Source: Geosiphon pyriformis uo1 (lineage: Eukaryota > Fungi > Glomeromycota). From it: a DNA stretch of 11,215 nucleotides. Positions 1 to 11,215 of this stretch are shown here, piece by piece. The notes below the pieces were generated by a model. It saw only the letters and a list, made by a program, of their open reading frames with translations, had not been told where the DNA came from and ran no database searches. The first letter of the stretch is position 1. Every line of letters starts with the position of its first letter. The translations under genes and the position numbers were made by a program. Location of the stretch: assembly GCA_016748015.1 (NCBI GenBank), contig JAAOMT010000108.1, positions 1 to 11,215 on the forward strand, in the 5' to 3' direction.

Positions 1-107
1 GTAGAGTAGATACCAGGGGGTCTAAGTAGGCTAACACTGTAAAGGGATTCGAACATAATCATAGGAACAACTAAGGAGGGACACATACAACTACTGTCAA
101 CCAGACG

Positions 108-389
108 TTAGGGCATGGAGAATCCACTAATAGCAGGAACTAAGGACCAGGGTCATAGAACTCTTACAGCCAAACGAATATGGAGCCAAACAGCTAAGGG
201 ACCGTAACTAAGATATGCAACAGCCAAGTAGCGTAGGGAAGTAAGGGAGGGGTCATAAAGTAGAGGCGTCAATCTAGCCAACATTTGTCTTAAACTCAAA
301 CAACGGGTGGTAGAATCAATAGACACATGGGATCATACCAACAGTATTAGGTAAGAAGGGTCAATTACACTGATTCGGGAAATTCCCAT
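108..389 (-). CDS. 93-aa ORF visible only if TGA=Trp (copy 1)
   Basis: ATG at 389-387, TAA at 110-108, internal TGA at 335-333 and 155-153. No family recognised. Confidence 0.25.
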
Positions 390-1064
390 ATTCGAAAGGA
401 CCTAAACCAACCTACGGGACACTATAAAGGGAGAGGCTCCAGGATACGAAATGGGGTAGAAAGGGGGTGGTTAAAATCGATCTAGCTCTATACATAAGGA
501 AACAACTTACAACCCAACCTCATACCGTAATATCCCAGGACCAACCTCTCAGAGCACTACCAATCAGGGAGTAAGGATAGAGAGTAGAGAGGGGGGGGTC
601 TCAAATTCAGATGCCATAAAGAATATCCCAAAATACAGCACCATCCCCTACTAGACCCCTACAAATACCCGACCATTCAAACAGATATCAGAACTGGGAC
701 TTTGTTTTTGGGGGAGCTTGAGTAGCACAAGAAGTAATCGTAGGAGTAGACTAATAGGGCTAATAGCTACCAAGATGGGGGCTCAATAGCTACAAGGAGT
801 AACCACACAAAGCGGCAATTGACATAGCGCTAACAGGGTCCCGTATAAGTAGAAATTACCAACCTAAAATCCTTCTAAATAAACAAGAGACCAATGACTC
901 TAAACAGATATCCAAATCAAAATAAAGTAACCGGACCTAAGGATCCAACAGGTACCCAACCTACGTCCCACAACCAAGTATCAGTACCTCCCATAACAGT
1001 AAACGCCCCCAACGTACCCCAGCATACACCAACCACCTACCAAATCTACACCTCCCGGACAGGT

Positions 1065-1379
1065 CTACGTATCCACCCGGGACCCACGAACCCCAACCAA
1101 CTCCCCATACAAACCCAGGATACGTAAACCACGGACCCAGGGATACCGTAACGCGTCCACGCGTACCCCCCCGTAGATCCGCCCGACGGGGTCCAGCAGG
1201 AGGGACAGGTACGCCAGTCCCCAGAAAGCGGACTGTCCAGGCCTAAAGGTGCAAAACAGGTACAAAACCCACGCAATACAGACACCAGTATACGCCACCC
1301 CACACCCAAATCCAAGCATGCCGCGTAACCAAATCTCCGCACAGCCCCCCCAATCGGCGTCGACTATCCTACCATCCAC
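1065..1379 (-). CDS. 104-aa hydrophobic ORF with weak cytochrome b-like motif (possible gene fragment)
   Basis: TGVCIAWVLYLFCTFRPGQSAFWGLAYLSLLL resembles the Cob segment W-x-x-GV...LPWGQMSFWGATVITNLL, but the spacing is shorter and no haem-ligand His is present. Confidence 0.22.
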   Translation of the reverse strand: MDGRIVDADWGGCAEIWLRGMLGFGCGVAYTGVCIAWVLYLFCTFRPGQSAFWGLAYLSLLLDPVGRIYGGVRVDALRYPWVRGLRILGLYGELVGVRGSRVDT

Positions 1380-1427
1380 CCCAACTCGCCTCCAGGCCCA
1401 AAGCCAACATCACTATTAGAAGCCATG

Positions 1428-1625
1428 TTAACCCCACCAACTAAACACCACAATAAACCCACGGGACCAAAGAAGCAGTTTGGGATACACAACCAATTTC
1501 CAACAGGATAACCATCACCAACAAATCTCAACATCTATTACACCACCACAGCCCCATAAGTACAACTACAAATATAGAGTGGGACAGATCAACAAACCAC
1601 ATAAACCAGATGCCAAACCTATCAT
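1428..1625 (-). CDS. Possible Nad3-like fragment (needs TGA=Trp and read-through of one TAG); copy at 9365-9562
   Basis: Manual translation gives MIGLASGLCGLLICPTLYL*LYLWGCGGVIDVEICWWWLSCWKLVVYPKLLLWSRGFIVVFSWWG-TAA. CG...DVEI recalls the Nad3 ECGF...FD(V/L)EI signature, but there is an in-frame TAG at 1566-1568. Confidence 0.18.
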
Positions 1626-1692
1626 GGGTACCCATCAGCAAGTGGGTAACAAGCATAGACCATCAAGACTACCCCCAAAGACAGACCCAAAT

Positions 1693-2262
1693 CTAGGGGG
1701 TAAACACCCACAACAACAACCACAACCACCATCATCGGGGGAGGGCAGAGATTGGACAAGGGAGAGACAAGGGGTGGGGAGGTGAGAGGATGGACGGGTA
1801 AAGGTGATCACTGATCCCAGTGAACCACATGATGTACCCCCAAGAGTGGAATTGGTAGGATGGTAGGATGTAAAGGGGATGTGAGGGGATCTGGGGTATG
1901 CCGCACACCCACCCAAACAGAAGCGGGACGATGGGAGTCGCGACAGATACGAAAGGGGGGAAATAGTATAGGCCGATAGTAAATGGAGGAGATGCCGAGA
2001 TCGCCCGCCAACCCCACCTAAAGATCCGAACCCCCAACCCTAAATCACAAAACCGGGGGGAAGCCAAGGGGAGGATCCCTTTATCCCAGAGGACCATCAG
2101 GTGCCCCACAACAGAGCAAATATGGAGAATGGGGGGTGAGAGGTAATATGGGTGGATGCCGCAACCTAACTGGGGAAATCACCGCCTATAGCTCCCCCCT
2201 CAGAAATTGGGGGGGGCAGAAGGGGGGGAGTAGTAAAGAGGACCATTATCCCCAGATTCCCT
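1693..2262 (-). CDS. 189-codon Pro/aromatic-rich open frame under TGA=Trp (extends track ORF 1732-2109); copy at 9630-10199
   Basis: There is no TAA or TAG between the TAA at 2263-2265 and the TAG at 1693-1695, and TGA occurs at 2200, 2179 and 1732. The frame begins at the cassette edge. Stops are scarce here in all frames, so support is weak. Confidence 0.2.
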
Positions 2263-2264
2263 TT

Positions 2265-5200
2265 AGCCCTAAATAGTAACAAGATCAAGGGGAGTCCCCT
2301 CTATACCCATGTAGTACTCTAGGAGAGTTATGTAGTATACAATATAGCCCTATAGAAGTGATACCTATATCCCTATTCTACAAATATACCAAGAGTCCCC
2401 CTCAGAGAGTGTAGTACAAAGTAGAGCAACACTTATACCCTTTTAGAAGTAGGGTAATAGCAAATAGAACACAATCCTCATCTGGCCTATTCAACGACTA
2501 TATAGAAGGATCCTAGTAGGTACCCTATGTAGAGTACTAGAGTATCACTCTAGAGTATGATCCTATCCCTTTATACCCATAAATCTAGAGTCCACTATGT
2601 AGTCCACTAGTCTACCATCTCCTAAGATCCCCCACTACAGAGGAAAACTAGGTAGGATCACTCAGGAGAGTGGATAGATAGTAGTCACGAATAGAGGAGT
2701 CCCTAGAGTAATAGTGTTAGACCCTCAGGAGTATTACCCTTATACCTATAGAGACCAGTATAGAGTCCACTAGGGTATCCAATAGGGTTAGATCAAAGAT
2801 TTCTAGAGAGTACCGGGAGTCCCCTATATATCCCGGATCCCTTGTAGAGTAAAACCAGTGTATAATCCCAGGTAGTCATAGTATATATACTACCCAACCC
2901 ATAGTCTACCTAGTGTCCCTAATAGTCCCAAGATGGAGTACTAGTATATAGAGACTACCATTATTACCATCCGCCCACTTCACTCGTAGTCCACTTGAGA
3001 GTACCATTATACCATTCGAGGACCATCTAGCCGGAGACCCATATCCTAATATAGAGTATAATCACAAATGTAGTCACCATAGAGAGTAGTACCATATCCC
3101 CTATATAGTAACTAGGAAGAATTCAATACCTAATTAACATACTACCCTAGAGTCTCGTTACCACAAAGATAGTCCACAGTATCCGACCTTTAGAGTAGAG
3201 TACCATATTACCAGACCCAAATAGTAAAAGATCTCCATTTTAGAGTACCTATATAGTCCTATTCTACCTATTGAGTCTCTAAAGTAAAGGTCCCAGAGTA
3301 GGATCCTTCTGGAGTGTATCCAAATGGAGTACTCAATATCCCCATATCCATCTAGAGGTGGAATACTGATGATAGTACCAATGGACCTTAAAGAGTCCTC
3401 AGTAGTACCCAAATGAGTACCTTAATAACCTCTAGATCCTAGTGTAATACCAAATATAACCCCTATGGAGTACCTATACCACTATAGTCCCTATATCCAT
3501 ATAGAGTAGTATCTCAGTCTACCATTAATACCTTCTAGTCCCTCAAGAGTCCCCTATCTAATTCCTAGTGTAATACCCTAATATGAGTCCATTGCCTGTC
3601 TACAAATGGAGTACCCATAATAGTAGAGCCTGTTAAGAGTACCATCTGAGGGTCATATACCTAGTATCCAACCAATCTACTTATAGTCCCTATTATAACC
3701 AAGAGTCCCCTCTAGAGTACCAGTAGTACCAGATATCTCTTCTAACCCTAGATAGAGAGTCCACTATATAGTTATATTCTACAAATGGAGTCCCTATATA
3801 TCCTCTAGTCCCCAATAGTACCCTATAGTCCCTATCTATCCCCAATCTAGTACCATATCACAAATAGTCCCTAGTAGGATCCAATAGACAAGGAAGAGGA
3901 GGGGGGAGTGGGTAAGATCACCAAATAGTCCGAAAATCTACCAGATAGTCCCTAATAGAGTAGTAGTATCCAATAGACCAGTACCCTATTCACTAGTCAT
4001 ACCTAGATACCCATCAAGTCACCTAATATCGTCCCATTGTATAGCCCTATGGCAGAGTACCTATTAGACCCATAATACCCAAATCTACCCTATAGAGGAC
4101 CTATCTAGCCCTATGGAGTCCCTGTAGTACCTGAGTACTGGGGTAGTATCACAATCTAGCCTGTAGAGTCAGATATTAGAGTACAACTTGAGTAGAGTCC
4201 CTATTATACCATTCTAACCCAGTATATAGAGTACCATTAGGGTAATATCCCTAGCCCTATAGAGTAGTGTCCCTAGAGAGACCAATAAAGAAGGATCCAG
4301 TATACCAAATCTAACCCTATGGAGTATTCAATATCCCTAGTCTAGAGTCCCTATTCAAGAGTCCACTAAATACCTATCTACCTTTTATAGAAGAATGGAG
4401 GTACCTAGTATACCATATACCCTATGTAGAGCACCCATAGTGGAGAGGAGTGTATAACCAGTAGACTATAGTCCATATGTAGGACCTTTAGGAGAGTATC
4501 CAGTATATCACTAGATAGCCCTGTGAGAGTACCAGTAGTACCAAATCTAGCCTCTAGAGTCCCCAGAGGGAGTCAGATAGCACAAAAGATAGTCCCAGAG
4601 TGGGGAGTATCAAGGTATCCCTCTACCCAATAGAGTCTAGTAGAGTACCCAATCTAGCAAATGTAGTCCCTATGCCATATACCCAATATTCTTCTAGTAG
4701 AACCATTTGAGAGTCCCTAATAGAGTAGAGTACCTAGGAGTATCATTATCCACTCTATACAAAATCGAGTATCTAGTATCCCTAAGATAGTCCCATTTGA
4801 GATAGTACCTAGGATGCCTATAGTAGGATCCCTAAAGACCTATCCAACTCTCTACCCAGTATCCCATATAGCCCAATAGATAGTCCCTAGCAGTAGAGTC
4901 CCTAAGAGTGATAACCCTTATCCTATAGCCCAATCTACCAATATACCTAATAGAGTACCCAATCTACCAGAGAGCCACTAATAGAGAGTACCCAATAGGG
5001 GTAGGATAGGATAGATCAATCTCCCAAATAGAGTCCCTAAGAGTATCACTAGGATAGTAAAACTCTACCCAATCTACCAATCTAGCCCAATATACCAAAT
5101 AGAGTATTCTAGAGTCATACCTTTATCCCCCAATCTACCACTATTTAGTCCACATAGAGTACCTAGAGTACCAGTAGCAAATAGAGTACCCTTAGACCTT

Positions 5201-7804
5201 TAGATGAGAGTACAGTGGTTCTAGAGTACCTGGAGAGTTAGAGTCCTAGTGTAATACCCATAGAGTACCTAGTATCCAACCAGTATGCCCAATATAGTAC
5301 CTATCCCCTAGAGTTACAATTTACCTATGTAGCCAGACGAGAGGACCAAGTAGAGTACAAAAGATAGTCGATAGTCCCTTATAATACCCAAGTCTACCTG
5401 AGTCCATATGTAGAGTCCCAGTAGTACCTATTGTCTAGTATACCAATATTACCATTATACCCTATAGAGTACTAGTAGTAGAAGTCCCCTACAGAGTCCC
5501 TAATCTACCTCTATAGTAGTGTCTACCATCTAGAGTATCACAAATGGATAGAGTCCCCAAATCATAGAGTATAATAGCCTAGTCACACGAGGAGTCCCCA
5601 TATTGTAGAGTAGAGAGGATTCAATAGACCCGATATAGACCTATAGAGTACCATATACCATGAGAGTCCAAATATGCCCTATCAAGTATTCAATAGATCC
5701 TAGAATACCCCAATCATAGTACGTATATCCCAATAGGGCCCTGTATAGAGTAGAGTACCTAGTATAGAACCCAATCAAGAGTCCACTAATAGAGTAGTGT
5801 AGTACAAAAGATACCATGATAGTCCCAGGGGGGTCTAGAGTCTCCAATCTACCACTGGGGGCTACCCTGTCTCCGAGAGTATCCAGTATCCCCTAAATAC
5901 CAAATAGAGTACTAGCAAAATAGAAGGATCCCAAGTATACCAAATAGAGTCCAAACATTGAGTACCCAATAGAGTAGATAGCCAGGTAGTATACCCAGAG
6001 TAGAGTCAAACTAGGGTATACCAAATGGAGTACATTTGAGAGTCCAGTATAAAGTCCCCTATAGTAACCAATGGATAGCCTTTGAATGGAGATGATGATA
6101 GTCCACATAGCCCTTATCTAGGAGTCCTATGTAGAGTCCCTAATGTAATATATGTCTAGAGTACCCATAGATCTCCCAATATCCACCGAGAGTAGAGAGT
6201 ACAAATATACCCTTATAGTCCTCTAGTGTATTACCCTATACCATTTAGAGTGTCTAGTCCTCTAGTCTCTGACTACCCTATCTTACCACTCTCTACAAGA
6301 GCCCTATGTAGTCAGATCCCTATATTACCCTAAAGGGTCTATATACTACCAAATCTAACCTATTGTAGTGTAAGATCCCTAGTGTAGAGAGTCCCTTAGA
6401 GAGTCCACTAGTCTCTATACTACCCAATATTCACTATTTTACCTATCTACCCTCTATAGTCCCAATACATCCAATAGAGTTCCTAGTCACCCGTGTATCC
6501 CTTAGTATCTAGTCCACTATTAGAGTAGTAGACTCCTTTATAGGATTTATACCAATAGTCCCCAATATACCCAAAGAGTATATGTATAGTCCTCTATTAG
6601 AGAAGAATAGTAACTAGTGTACCAAAAAAACAATAGTACCAGTATCTACCCAGTCTAACCATATCCCTCTAGAGTATAGTGTATTTAGTCTACACCTATC
6701 TAGTCCCAGTAGTGTTATACCATAATAGGTCCCTATCTTTACAGTAATTCAGATAGTCCCCAGCAAGGACCTTATATTCACATAGAGTACCAATAGACCA
6801 TTTAGAAGGACTTGTATACCCTATCCCCTATACCAAATAGTACCACGAGTATGGGGTTATCCCTTATACCATATAGCAAAGAGTATATATCAAGTAGGAT
6901 CACTAAGGGAGTAATGCCTATAGTACGAGTCTCTAGAGTATAGTGTCCTACAAATATACCATTACACAAGAGTACCTGTATAGAGTACACTATTATACCT
7001 ACGGAGTAGTGTAATACCATAGAACCCTAAAGATGGGACCTTGTTGGATCCCTAAATATCCAATTCTACCATGAGTCCGCTATTAGACCCTATACCCAAT
7101 CAGCCATCAAGTGGATCCTTAGATATCCCTCTCTCTAGCCAAATAGAGTCCCCAATATAGAGTACAATAGAGCAGTCCCATAAGGGAGAGTCCCCTAATC
7201 TTACCTATATCAACATAGAGTCCTTTGTATAATACCAAATAGAGAGTACTCAATATACACGTGTATAGTAGAGTCCTTAAGATCCTAAATAGATCCTTAT
7301 AGCCAAAACAGTAGTGTAATACTCAATCTCCCAAAATAGGTACCTCCCACCCAGTAGATCCCTAATAACCTATTTGAGTCCCCATTTAGTAGTATCCCAG
7401 GCGTACCAATAGACCCAATGAGCACTAGAGATTACCAATACCACTAAGATACCCAGTACCCTATGGAGTCCCATAGTACAAATATTTAGGAGAGAGTCCA
7501 GTAGTATCCAACAAGTGAGAGGATACCCAATGTAGAGAGTAAAATCCAACTCCTAGATACTAGAGAGTCCATATATCAATGAGGGTAAGATCCCTATACC
7601 TAAACTAGTAAACATGTAGCCTCCAATAGAGTATAGGAGAGTATCTACCCTAAAGAGTACTTTAGTCCCTAATGGTAGAGAATCCCTTGTATACCAAATT
7701 CAATATAGAACCCAGAGAGTATTAGACCCTAGTAGTACCCAGTATAGTCCACAAATCTAACCTATGGAGTAGGATCCTTATGGGCAGTATAACATTATCC
7801 CCTA
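2265..7804. repeat. Non-coding mosaic of short shuffled words (cryptic-simplicity repeat region)
   Basis: Recurrent words include AGAGTACCAGTAGTACCA (3714-3731, 4526-4543), CCTAGTGTAATACC (3438, 3564, 5245), CCCTATGGAGT (3461, 4109, 4315, 7459), CTACAAATGGAGT (3600, 3779) and ACAAAAGATAGTC (4582, 5357), plus very many AGAGTCC and AGAGTAC. No fixed period is visible and the ORF track shows nothing longer than 84 aa. Boundaries are approximate. Confidence 0.9.
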
Positions 7805-8023
7805 TTATAACCCAGTACTACAGGAACCAAGGCCCCCAATAACCATGAACAATATAGGGACCATTGGAGCCATAACCATTAGCAAACTTCTACAAATTAA
7901 GAATCCTAATAAGCTAAACCAAACAACCAAAGCAAATGTAGAGTAGATACCAGGGGGTCTAAGTAGGCTAACACTGTAAAGGGATTCGAACATAATCATA
8001 GGAACAACTAAGGAGGGACACAT
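7805..8023 (-). CDS. 72-aa hydrophobic ORF, or C-terminal part of a longer membrane-protein gene
   Basis: ATG to TAA, with about 2-3 hydrophobic stretches (FALVVWFSLLGFLIC, LLMVMAPMVPILFMVIGG). Its TAA lies about where the word mosaic begins. No family recognised. Confidence 0.35.
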   Translation of the reverse strand: MCPSLVVPMIMFESLYSVSLLRPPGIYSTFALVVWFSLLGFLICRSLLMVMAPMVPILFMVIGGLGSCSTGL

Positions 8024-8044
8024 ACAACTACTGTCAACCAGACG

Positions 8045-8326
8045 TTAGGGCATGGAGAATCCACTAATAGCAGGAACTAAGGACCAGGGTCATAGAACTC
8101 TTACAGCCAAACGAATATGGAGCCAAACAGCTAAGGGACCGTAACTAAGATATGCAACAGCCAAGTAGCGTAGGGAAGTAAGGGAGGGGTCATAAAGTAG
8201 AGGCGTCAATCTAGCCAACATTTGTCTTAAACTCAAACAACGGGTGGTAGAATCAATAGACACATGGGATCATACCAACAGTATTAGGTAAGAAGGGTCA
8301 ATTACACTGATTCGGGAAATTCCCAT
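8045..8326 (-). CDS. 93-aa ORF visible only if TGA=Trp (copy at 108-389)
   Basis: Manual translation gives MGISRISVIDPSYLILLVWSHV...AVWLHIRLAVRVLWPWSLVPAISGFSMP-TAA with two in-frame TGA (333 and 153 in copy 1). It is in the same frame as the 72-aa ORF and ends 21 nt upstream of it. Confidence 0.25.
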
Positions 8327-9001
8327 ATTCGAAAGGACCTAAACCAACCTACGGGACACTATAAAGGGAGAGGCTCCAGGATACGAAATGGGGTAGAAAG
8401 GGGGTGGTTAAAATCGATCTAGCTCTATACATAAGGAAACAACTTACAACCCAACCTCATACCGTAATATCCCAGGACCAACCTCTCAGAGCACTACCAA
8501 TCAGGGAGTAAGGATAGAGAGTAGAGAGGGGGGGGTCTCAAATTCAGATGCCATAAAGAATATCCCAAAATACAGCACCATCCCCTACTAGACCCCTACA
8601 AATACCCGACCATTCAAACAGATATCAGAACTGGGACTTTGTTTTTGGGGGAGCTTGAGTAGCACAAGAAGTAATCGTAGGAGTAGACTAATAGGGCTAA
8701 TAGCTACCAAGATGGGGGCTCAATAGCTACAAGGAGTAACCACACAAAGCGGCAATTGACATAGCGCTAACAGGGTCCCGTATAAGTAGAAATTACCAAC
8801 CTAAAATCCTTCTAAATAAACAAGAGACCAATGACTCTAAACAGATATCCAAATCAAAATAAAGTAACCGGACCTAAGGATCCAACAGGTACCCAACCTA
8901 CGTCCCACAACCAAGTATCAGTACCTCCCATAACAGTAAACGCCCCCAACGTACCCCAGCATACACCAACCACCTACCAAATCTACACCTCCCGGACAGG
9001 T

Positions 9002-9316
9002 CTACGTATCCACCCGGGACCCACGAACCCCAACCAACTCCCCATACAAACCCAGGATACGTAAACCACGGACCCAGGGATACCGTAACGCGTCCACGCG
9101 TACCCCCCCGTAGATCCGCCCGACGGGGTCCAGCAGGAGGGACAGGTACGCCAGTCCCCAGAAAGCGGACTGTCCAGGCCTAAAGGTGCAAAACAGGTAC
9201 AAAACCCACGCAATACAGACACCAGTATACGCCACCCCACACCCAAATCCAAGCATGCCGCGTAACCAAATCTCCGCACAGCCCCCCCAATCGGCGTCGA
9301 CTATCCTACCATCCAC
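9002..9316 (-). CDS. Second copy of the 104-aa hydrophobic ORF
   Basis: Identical translation in the ORF track, at offset 7937. Confidence 0.22.
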   Translation of the reverse strand: MDGRIVDADWGGCAEIWLRGMLGFGCGVAYTGVCIAWVLYLFCTFRPGQSAFWGLAYLSLLLDPVGRIYGGVRVDALRYPWVRGLRILGLYGELVGVRGSRVDT

Positions 9317-10201
9317 CCCAACTCGCCTCCAGGCCCAAAGCCAACATCACTATTAGAAGCCATGTTAACCCCACCAACTAAACACCACAATAAACCCACG
9401 GGACCAAAGAAGCAGTTTGGGATACACAACCAATTTCCAACAGGATAACCATCACCAACAAATCTCAACATCTATTACACCACCACAGCCCCATAAGTAC
9501 AACTACAAATATAGAGTGGGACAGATCAACAAACCACATAAACCAGATGCCAAACCTATCATGGGTACCCATCAGCAAGTGGGTAACAAGCATAGACCAT
9601 CAAGACTACCCCCAAAGACAGACCCAAATCTAGGGGGTAAACACCCACAACAACAACCACAACCACCATCATCGGGGGAGGGCAGAGATTGGACAAGGGA
9701 GAGACAAGGGGTGGGGAGGTGAGAGGATGGACGGGTAAAGGTGATCACTGATCCCAGTGAACCACATGATGTACCCCCAAGAGTGGAATTGGTAGGATGG
9801 TAGGATGTAAAGGGGATGTGAGGGGATCTGGGGTATGCCGCACACCCACCCAAACAGAAGCGGGACGATGGGAGTCGCGACAGATACGAAAGGGGGGAAA
9901 TAGTATAGGCCGATAGTAAATGGAGGAGATGCCGAGATCGCCCGCCAACCCCACCTAAAGATCCGAACCCCCAACCCTAAATCACAAAACCGGGGGGAAG
10001 CCAAGGGGAGGATCCCTTTATCCCAGAGGACCATCAGGTGCCCCACAACAGAGCAAATATGGAGAATGGGGGGTGAGAGGTAATATGGGTGGATGCCGCA
10101 ACCTAACTGGGGAAATCACCGCCTATAGCTCCCCCCTCAGAAATTGGGGGGGGCAGAAGGGGGGGAGTAGTAAAGAGGACCATTATCCCCAGATTCCCTT
10201 T

Positions 10202-11215
10202 AGCCCTAAATAGTAACAAGATCAAGGGGAGTCCCCTCTATACCCATGTAGTACTCTAGGAGAGTTATGTAGTATACAATATAGCCCTATAGAAGTGATA
10301 CCTATATCCCTATTCTACAAATATACCAAGAGTCCCCCTCAGAGAGTGTAGTACAAAGTAGAGCAACACTTATACCCTTTTAGAAGTAGGGTAATAGCAA
10401 ATAGAACACAATCCTCATCTGGCCTATTCAACGACTATATAGAAGGATCCTAGTAGGTACCCTATGTAGAGTACTAGAGTATCACTCTAGAGTATGATCC
10501 TATCCCTTTATACCCATAAATCTAGAGTCCACTATGTAGTCCACTAGTCTACCATCTCCTAAGATCCCCCACTACAGAGGAAAACTAGGTAGGATCACTC
10601 AGGAGAGTGGATAGATAGTAGTCACGAATAGAGGAGTCCCTAGAGTAATAGTGTTAGACCCTCAGGAGTATTACCCTTATACCTATAGAGACCAGTATAG
10701 AGTCCACTAGGGTATCCAATAGGGTTAGATCAAAGATTTCTAGAGAGTACCGGGAGTCCCCTATATATCCCGGATCCCTTGTAGAGTAAAACCAGTGTAT
10801 AATCCCAGGTAGTCATAGTATATATACTACCCAACCCATAGTCTACCTAGTGTCCCTAATAGTCCCAAGATGGAGTACTAGTATATAGAGACTACCATTA
10901 TTACCATCCGCCCACTTCACTCGTAGTCCACTTGAGAGTACCATTATACCATTCGAGGACCATCTAGCCGGAGACCCATATCCTAATATAGAGTATAATC
11001 ACAAATGTAGTCACCATAGAGAGTAGTACCATATCCCCTATATAGTAACTAGGAAGAATTCAATACCTAATTAACATACTACCCTAGAGTCTCGTTACCA
11101 CAAAGATAGTCCACAGTATCCGACCTTTAGAGTAGAGTACCATATTACCAGACCCAAATAGTAAAAGATCTCCATTTTAGAGTACCTATATAGTCCTATT
11201 CTACCTATTGAGTCT
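10202..11215. repeat. Start of second copy of the word-mosaic region
   Basis: Corresponds to 2265-3278 at offset 7937. Confidence 0.9.

Follow-up and report, generated by a model that had tools for sequence, protein, structure and literature searches.

The stretch of DNA analysed here (contig JAAOMT010000108.1, 11,215 nt, forward strand; hereafter the window) holds 1.41 copies of a repeat unit of 7,937 bp. Our preferred reading is that this unit is a protein-free, multicopy element, more likely a small circle than a member of an array, and that it resides in a eukaryote that maintains it in trans; we put the probability of this reading at about 0.5. Positions 1-3278 of the window were identical to positions 7938-11215, with 0 mismatches over 3,278 positions. 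Exact identity over this length is beyond the reach of chance, and the seamless 7,937-bp period that had been reported in a first-pass annotation of the window was thereby upheld. The origin of the unit at the 7937/7938 junction is arbitrary, and the junction bears no feature. Besides the period, no long direct or inverted repeats and no terminal inverted repeats were present in the window. The lag of the repeat, 7,937, sits slightly below 8,192.

The unit is made up of a mosaic of short words and a unique, strand-biased part (Table 1). The division into about 70% mosaic and about 30% unique DNA, which was also proposed in the first-pass annotation, was recovered from two counts. The density of mosaic 6-mers climbs at ~2250-2300 and drops at ~7750-7800, and the 5,540 nt of mosaic contain 317 AGT trinucleotides (~83 expected from base composition), against 31 in the 2,397 nt of unique sequence. 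The mosaic is dominated by a small vocabulary (TAGAGTAC, AGAGTACC, AGAGTCCC and ATACCAAAT). Aligning its AGT contexts gave a polar motif, (T/A)A(G/T)AGT(A/C)C(C/A), which is present in ~317 copies at irregular spacing and whose information is lost beyond ~5 nt either side of AGT. Nearly all of the words lie on the plus strand (plus to minus, 65:4 for TAGAGT and 46:0 for AGTCCC). Dinucleotide odds in the mosaic are low for CG (0.12), GC (0.23), TT (0.40) and AA (0.55) and high for AG (2.06), CC (1.96) and TA (1.73); GT is also enriched, and the C content is 23%. The unique part consists of 35% A, 26% C, 23% G and 16% T. A exceeds T in each of its 100-nt windows, which agrees with its earlier description as strand-biased, and the asymmetry keeps the same sign around the whole unit. 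This uniform strand asymmetry may reflect one-directional replication or transcription, as in organelle DNA.

Self-similarity of the mosaic was no greater than that of Markov texts of order 3 to 5, and by this measure the mosaic is like fifth-order Markov text. The longest exact repeat internal to it was 18 nt, and no 60-nt window attained 40 matches at any lag in a diagonal self-comparison. Gapped self-BLAST gave a top score of 48 bits and 203 high-scoring segment pairs, as compared to 39-46 bits and 186-240 pairs in fifth-order Markov simulations. Because both the diagonal and the gapped comparisons were at the Markov level, a higher-order repeat within the mosaic was rejected. Hidden hypermutated duplicates were also rejected, as none appeared in two-letter alphabets. 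Tandem Repeats Finder reported only short arrays in the mosaic, of 2-4.6 copies with periods of 6-18 nt. With its scattered polar motif and local traces of slippage, and with no recent segmental duplication, the mosaic matches the look of "cryptically simple" DNA, a concept that reportedly goes back to Tautz and colleagues in 1986. The mosaic would have arisen, and would persist, through slippage during replication together with the unequal exchange of its short motifs, always in one orientation.

Of the topology, the period alone is visible: at 1.41 copies and with no flanks, a circle and a head-to-tail array look alike. The repeat copies show no divergence, and the window includes no chromosomal flanks. 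As the 1,014 nt of slippage-prone mosaic in the second copy are also identical to their counterpart in the first, a circle or a collapsed consensus, i.e. a single physical copy read twice, is favoured. We prefer a circle over an array because the copies are identical across this 1 kb of slippage-prone DNA and because an A>T asymmetry of constant sign is more of the organelle than of the nuclear type; neither copy identity nor the asymmetry is decisive. If the unit is a small circle, the assembler would have run ~1.4 times around it.

Table 1. Features of the window. Positions are those of the 11,215-nt stretch.
Feature	Positions	Strand	Details
Full repeat unit	1-7937	.	Period 7,937 bp; arbitrary origin; identity of 1-3278 and 7938-11215
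Second, partial copy of the unit	7938-11215	.	3,278 bp, equal to 1-3278; contains 1,014 bp of slippage-prone mosaic (10202-11215)
Word mosaic, cryptically simple DNA	2265-7804	+	5,540 bp, ~70% of the unit; characterised by k-mers, dinucleotide odds, motif profile and self-similarity; borders from 6-mer density
Unique part ("cassette")	7805-10201	+	2,397 bp, ~30% of the unit, joining its positions 7805-7937 and 1-2264; A-rich and T-poor throughout
A+G-rich block	1-560	+	Positive GC skew; first ~15 bases still mosaic-type words
Transition block	561-870	+	G8 run (591-598); T5 (705-709), the longest plus-strand T run
A+C-rich block	871-1730	+	Per 100 nt, A 26-46%, C 24-43%, T 8-18%; minus strand G+T-rich
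A+G-rich block	1731-2264	+	G6-G8 runs; change of GC-skew sign at ~1730
ATG-to-stop open reading frame, 72 aa	7805-8023	-	Hydrophobic; at the mosaic/unique border; T at 52% of second codon positions

These data bear directly on the possibility that the unit is a nuclear macrosatellite. A 7.9-kb unit that combines a decayed satellite of short motifs with a unique spacer would then be repeated head to tail in a eukaryotic chromosome, and the window would be an excised piece of this array or the product of its collapse during assembly. Macrosatellites comprise many head-to-tail copies, diverged to some degree, between unique chromosomal flanks. In favour of this explanation are the direct head-to-tail period that lacks flanks, the wholly non-coding character of the unit, short-motif DNA in one orientation as is typical of satellites, and small local arrays with periods of 6-18 nt; high-copy repeats are also what low-coverage eukaryotic DNA yields on assembly. 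The unit shares a scrambled one-orientation motif, slippage arrays, non-coding character and a head-to-tail higher-order period with cryptically simple DNA, decayed satellites and macrosatellites. In contrast to these, its 5.5-kb mosaic is without recent segmental duplication, its copies are perfectly identical, its unique spacer is asymmetric and no chromosomal flanks were seen. The arguments against a macrosatellite are that zero differences were found across 3.3 kb of neighbouring copies, including 1 kb of slippage-prone DNA, that the 7.9 kb contain no transposon or gene remnants, and that nuclear sequence seldom shows so strong an A>T skew along 2.4 kb of unique DNA. We consider a macrosatellite unlikely, and about equally likely as the diplonemid-type chromosome discussed below.

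The protein-free character of the unit was assessed by domain searches and by tests that do not depend on homology. All 258 stop-free pieces of at least 20 aa were put to Pfam. The 131 pieces of at least 30 aa contained no family and gave two matches only (E = 0.06-0.08), and PHROGs and NCBIfam returned nothing for the same pieces. The 127 pieces of 20-29 aa gave one match with an E value of 0.018, which is at chance level for 127 queries. The shortage of T on one strand and of A on the other lets open reading frames (ORFs) of 70-150 codons stack up in several frames of the unique part; the overlapping multi-frame ORFs of 871-1730 are an artefact of composition. Varying the subset of stop codons, reversing the sequence and relabelling the bases did not yield one dominant frame or a credible gene in any case. 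The Fourier signal at period 3 was noise in every 300-nt window, whether computed per base or in the purine/pyrimidine, amino/keto and weak/strong alphabets, and the codon-position chi-square was not significant for any block. As the purine/pyrimidine alphabet is invariant under A-to-I or C-to-U editing and was also devoid of period 3, a long edited coding region is disfavoured as well.

The sole ATG-to-stop ORF with any coding-like trait was the 72-aa minus-strand ORF at the mosaic/unique border. Its codon-position bias was the strongest in the unit (chi-square p = 0.005, uncorrected for ~60 frames). We searched 1.84 billion representatives with the overlapping 79-aa frame (7808-8044), without restricting target length, in order that full-length relatives of a gene fragment could appear, and obtained 0 matches at E ≤ 0.001. 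This ORF belongs to no family, is without relatives and is probably not a gene. The 72-aa product may form two membrane helices. Word searches for homologues of three minus-strand ORFs (3161-3421 in the mosaic, 1735-2178 in the unique part and the hydrophobic 7808-8023) found none, and an exact look-up of 20 ATG ORFs (up to 121 aa) in a set of 15 billion proteins found none of them present.

Searches for RNA genes, structure and regulatory signals were likewise negative. ARAGORN predicted 0 transfer RNAs (tRNAs), and an Rfam search of the complete unit on both strands gave no match at E ≤ 1, ribozymes included. Folding sixteen 150-nt windows of the unique part on both strands resulted in z-scores between -2.3 and +1.9, with no excess structure. 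Sigma-70-like promoters (18 versus 17.5 expected) and intrinsic terminators (5 versus 8.6) were at the level of shuffled controls. As Pfam, PHROGs, NCBIfam, Rfam and ARAGORN were all empty, the initial statement that the window lacks a recognisable Rep, capsid, transposase, reverse transcriptase or ribosomal RNA (rRNA) held.

Since nothing that is encoded could replicate or move the unit, it must be copied in trans. The carrier that would do so is, from the style of the sequence, a eukaryote and possibly an organelle. A bacterial plasmid or phage is disfavoured because CTAG and TAG are abundant and because there are no ORFs, and BLAST of the unit against plasmids and phages, in near and distant modes, produced no match. 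We also considered a virus, plasmid or viroid-like circular replicon with genes masked by an unusual genetic code. The contig looks circular, and TGA occurs on the plus strand 42 times versus ~124 expected, such that stop sets containing TGA only lead to runs of up to 722 codons. However, these long runs occur in several frames and follow from base composition together with CG and TG depletion, and the period-3 test, which is independent of the code and of base labels, gave no signal. No piece contained a Rep, capsid or polymerase domain, and no ribozyme was found. A rod-like fold is ruled out by the excess of A (35%) over T (16%), and fold z-scores were near 0. The possibility of a recoded replicon is thus largely refuted, and we regard it as scarcely credible.

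Multipartite mitochondrial genomes of animals (lice, booklice, thrips and Globodera) resemble the unit in that they consist of small circles with a large shared non-coding region. However, those circles carry intact, recognisable protein, tRNA or rRNA genes, whereas ARAGORN, Rfam and Pfam detected none in the unit. With fair confidence, these results rule out viruses, Rep plasmids, transposons, ribosomal DNA, viroid-like RNAs, animal-type mitochondrial minichromosomes that carry intact genes, and any ordinary protein coding. These exclusions constitute the main value of the analysis, which in this sense is negative.

The modules of diplonemid mitochondrial genes may be short or edited and may use TGA for Trp. 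Taking TGA as a Trp codon, we therefore compared translations of the unit in six frames to Escherichia coli CyoA/B/C and NuoA, B, CD and H-N, both as written and in an editing-tolerant mode in which each A could stand for A or G and each C for C or T. In both modes the best segment was a minus-strand frame at 1431-1514 (context 1416-1640), in which LLLWSRGFIVVFSWWG was matched to the conserved cox1/CyoB sequence MLWTIGFIVTFSVGG. The frame is bounded by stops and contains a TGA, and the matching stretch is a 14-mer. This candidate was rejected as a chance match. A score at least as high was reached in 24 of 200 shuffled protein sets for the unique region and in 49 of 200 for the whole unit (p = 0.12-0.25), and in the editing-tolerant mode its score was below that of every shuffle. 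Moreover, phmmer against all PDB sequences returned no cox1 chain at E ≤ 10, and Pfam was empty at the same threshold. When set against the 16S and 23S rRNA of E. coli in nucleotide, editing-tolerant and purine-pyrimidine alphabets, the unit scored no higher than reversed or shuffled controls. An 11-mer in the mosaic (5337-5347, plus strand), ACGAGAGGACC, exactly reproduces the core of the 23S rRNA sarcin-ricin loop and lies inside the shuffled-rRNA null. Motifs that flank cassettes in Namystynia were absent from the unit or at chance. These tests have low power for genes of the diplonemid type, as modules of <20 aa, 'y' genes and dense editing would escape them, and so would cob and atp6, which have no E. 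coli counterpart and were covered by Pfam only. It is the layout of the unit that suggests a mitochondrial origin, and the defining features that could be tested were negative or at chance.

Among the closest known parallels to this layout are the multipartite mitochondrial chromosomes of diplonemids. According to this explanation the mosaic would be a class-specific constant region, and the 2.4 kb of unique DNA would form a long cassette that is either module-less or contains one or more modules that are unrecognisable because they are too short, too edited or too lineage-specific ('y' genes). In a diplonemid-type genome, sibling chromosomes with other cassettes have the constant region in common at >90% identity, and transcripts of the modules undergo trans-splicing, U addition and C-to-U and A-to-I editing. 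Diplonemid chromosomes are circles of ~4-10 kb (PMC5658414), a range that includes the 7,937 bp of the unit if circularity is granted to a sequence of 1.41 copies. As in Diplonema papillatum (classes A and B), Sulcionema and Artemidia, a large repetitive non-coding part is combined with one unique region, and no gene for autonomous replication is present. The repeats of diplonemid constant regions are all in one orientation (PMC3035467), as are those of the mosaic. Constant regions show no similarity between species (PMC5658414), so that missing relatives would be expected. Modules may be very short, edited or derived from unknown 'y' genes (PMC5658414; PMC7049700), and both module-less cassettes and atypically long ones of >2 kb are on record in Sulcionema and Artemidia (PMC7049700). 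Before editing, clusters of C-to-U and A-to-I sites are A- and C-rich DNA (PMC4889940), which the A+C-rich DNA of the unit resembles, and the strand asymmetry is organelle-like over the whole unit.

Several results argue against a diplonemid chromosome. No gene piece was identified by Pfam among the 258 pieces or in the comparison with CyoABC and Nuo, whether TGA was read as Trp or editing was tolerated. The rRNA comparison was at its null, the purine/pyrimidine alphabet lacked period 3, and the Namystynia flank motifs were absent or at chance. Known editing clusters span 3-85 nt (PMC4889940), whereas the A+C-rich block is 860 nt long, ten times longer than any of them. The unique region makes up 30% of the unit; a classical cassette is ~0.2-2 kb and accounts for 5-10% of the chromosome (PMC7049700). 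The repetitive part of the unit has no repeats of >18 nt, while D. papillatum has dispersed and tandem repeats of >40 bp (PMC3035467). Finally, neither a module nor a sibling was found here: no sibling with the mosaic 30-mer described below was present in the metagenome collection. We therefore treat a diplonemid chromosome as a tentative alternative that is unlikely to be correct. Also doubtful is the broader proposal that the unit is a multipartite organelle chromosome of an uncharacterised protist, diplonemid-like or beyond, in which the constant region would consist of ~320 binding or slippage motifs and the 2.4-kb cassette would be readable only after extreme processing, either because it contains very short modules or because A-to-I and C-to-U editing extends across hundreds of bases.

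A second euglenozoan alternative is a kinetoplastid-type guide-RNA circle, i.e. a large bodonid minicircle, or another component of a kinetoplast. Kinetoplastid minicircles are gene-poor circles maintained in trans, and the unit contains one near-match to their universal 12-mer: GTGGTTGGTGTA at 1025-1036, in the G+T-rich minus strand, differs by one mismatch from GGGGTTGGTGTA. Parts of the unique region are also T-poor and A/G-rich, like pre-edited or guide sequences. However, 0.27 such matches are expected per window and the 2 observed represent one site in both copies, which places the 12-mer at chance. When the flanks of 1025-1036 were inspected by eye, the other two conserved blocks were not in the canonical upstream order. 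Unlike minicircles, the unit is devoid of guide cassettes flanked by inverted repeats, and its mosaic, which is 23% C and depleted of AA and TT, resembles neither A-tract bent minicircle DNA nor A/G-rich guide genes. A kinetoplast component is very improbable.

Searches for relatives and siblings of the unit were carried out in collections of viral, metagenome and genome contigs. Unique 22-31-mers from the mosaic and the unique part were absent from viral contigs, and one mosaic 30-mer was absent from metagenome and prokaryote-genome contigs. Recurrent mosaic 15-18-mers gave, among the matches listed, single matches in about the number expected by chance in the viral, metagenome and genome collections. 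None of the 207 loci retrieved with mosaic words had a mosaic-like word density. One of them (L193; WLWD01005725.1, 1-1700) proved to be an unrelated, regular 30-nt satellite of ~55 copies beside unique eukaryote-like sequence, and it had surfaced solely through one variant satellite unit that contains the 17-mer query. Ten contigs from related metagenomes (L117, L122, L123, L125, L139, L153, L168 and L192 of Ga0126342, plus L102 and L204) were unrelated to the window beyond the 17-mer. These contigs share a repeat family with an end that starts exactly with AGAGTACCAGTAGTACC and continues with ~60 conserved nt; this shared end of the Ga0126342-type contigs is probably the terminus of a transposable element of the host genome. 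A literature search on the motif words led to primers only, and the diplonemid supplement of PMC5658414 contained none of the mosaic words.

A further alternative is that the sequence is not natural and either stems from faulty assembly or concatenation or was made synthetically or by a machine. None of the search routes led to a relative, words of the window were absent from all three contig collections, and 0 of 20 ATG ORFs were in the 15-billion-protein collection. The mosaic was indistinguishable from fifth-order Markov text, and coding, structural and regulatory signals were absent. As pure speculation, a verbatim lag just below 8,192 is the type of loop that a generative sequence model with an 8k context may produce. 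In contrast, the sharply delimited, ordered blocks, the small slippage arrays and the consistent polar motif are those of natural cryptically simple DNA, absence from the collections would be expected for an unsampled protist, and no positive indication of an artefact emerged. We judge an artificial origin to be quite improbable, less so than a kinetoplast component.

Four points weigh against a circle carried by a eukaryote and copied in trans, which nevertheless remains our preferred reading. By sequence, 1.41 copies fit a tandem array equally well. Neither relatives nor siblings were found, so that copy number, host and cell compartment are inferred throughout. The lack of genes, structure and relatives and the Markov-like statistics would also be expected of an artefact or a synthetic sequence. 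Lastly, a gene piece that is short, heavily edited or lineage-specific may escape the methods used. All observations are compatible with the fallback offered in the first-pass annotation, another Rep-less circular DNA, which makes no specific claim. If the unit is a natural circle, it would be a replicon without recognisable maintenance information and without relatives, and thus parasitic DNA, passenger DNA or one of the chromosomes of a fragmented organelle genome in an unsequenced lineage. The organelle case, if true, would extend diplonemid-style gene fragmentation and editing, and the mosaic could then be used as a probe for the remaining genome. A macrosatellite or an artefact would be ordinary.

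The unique part is itself built of G-rich and C-rich blocks. Its GC skew changes sign at ~560-870 and again at ~1730, while the AT skew stays positive. Runs of G6-G8 cluster at 1955-2229, and C7 runs are located at 1166 and 1345. These switch points and runs could mark an origin or divergent transcription. If the unit has any function, the unique 2.4 kb with its two switch points would be the expected site of an origin, of a promoter or of a gene piece that is very short or edited.

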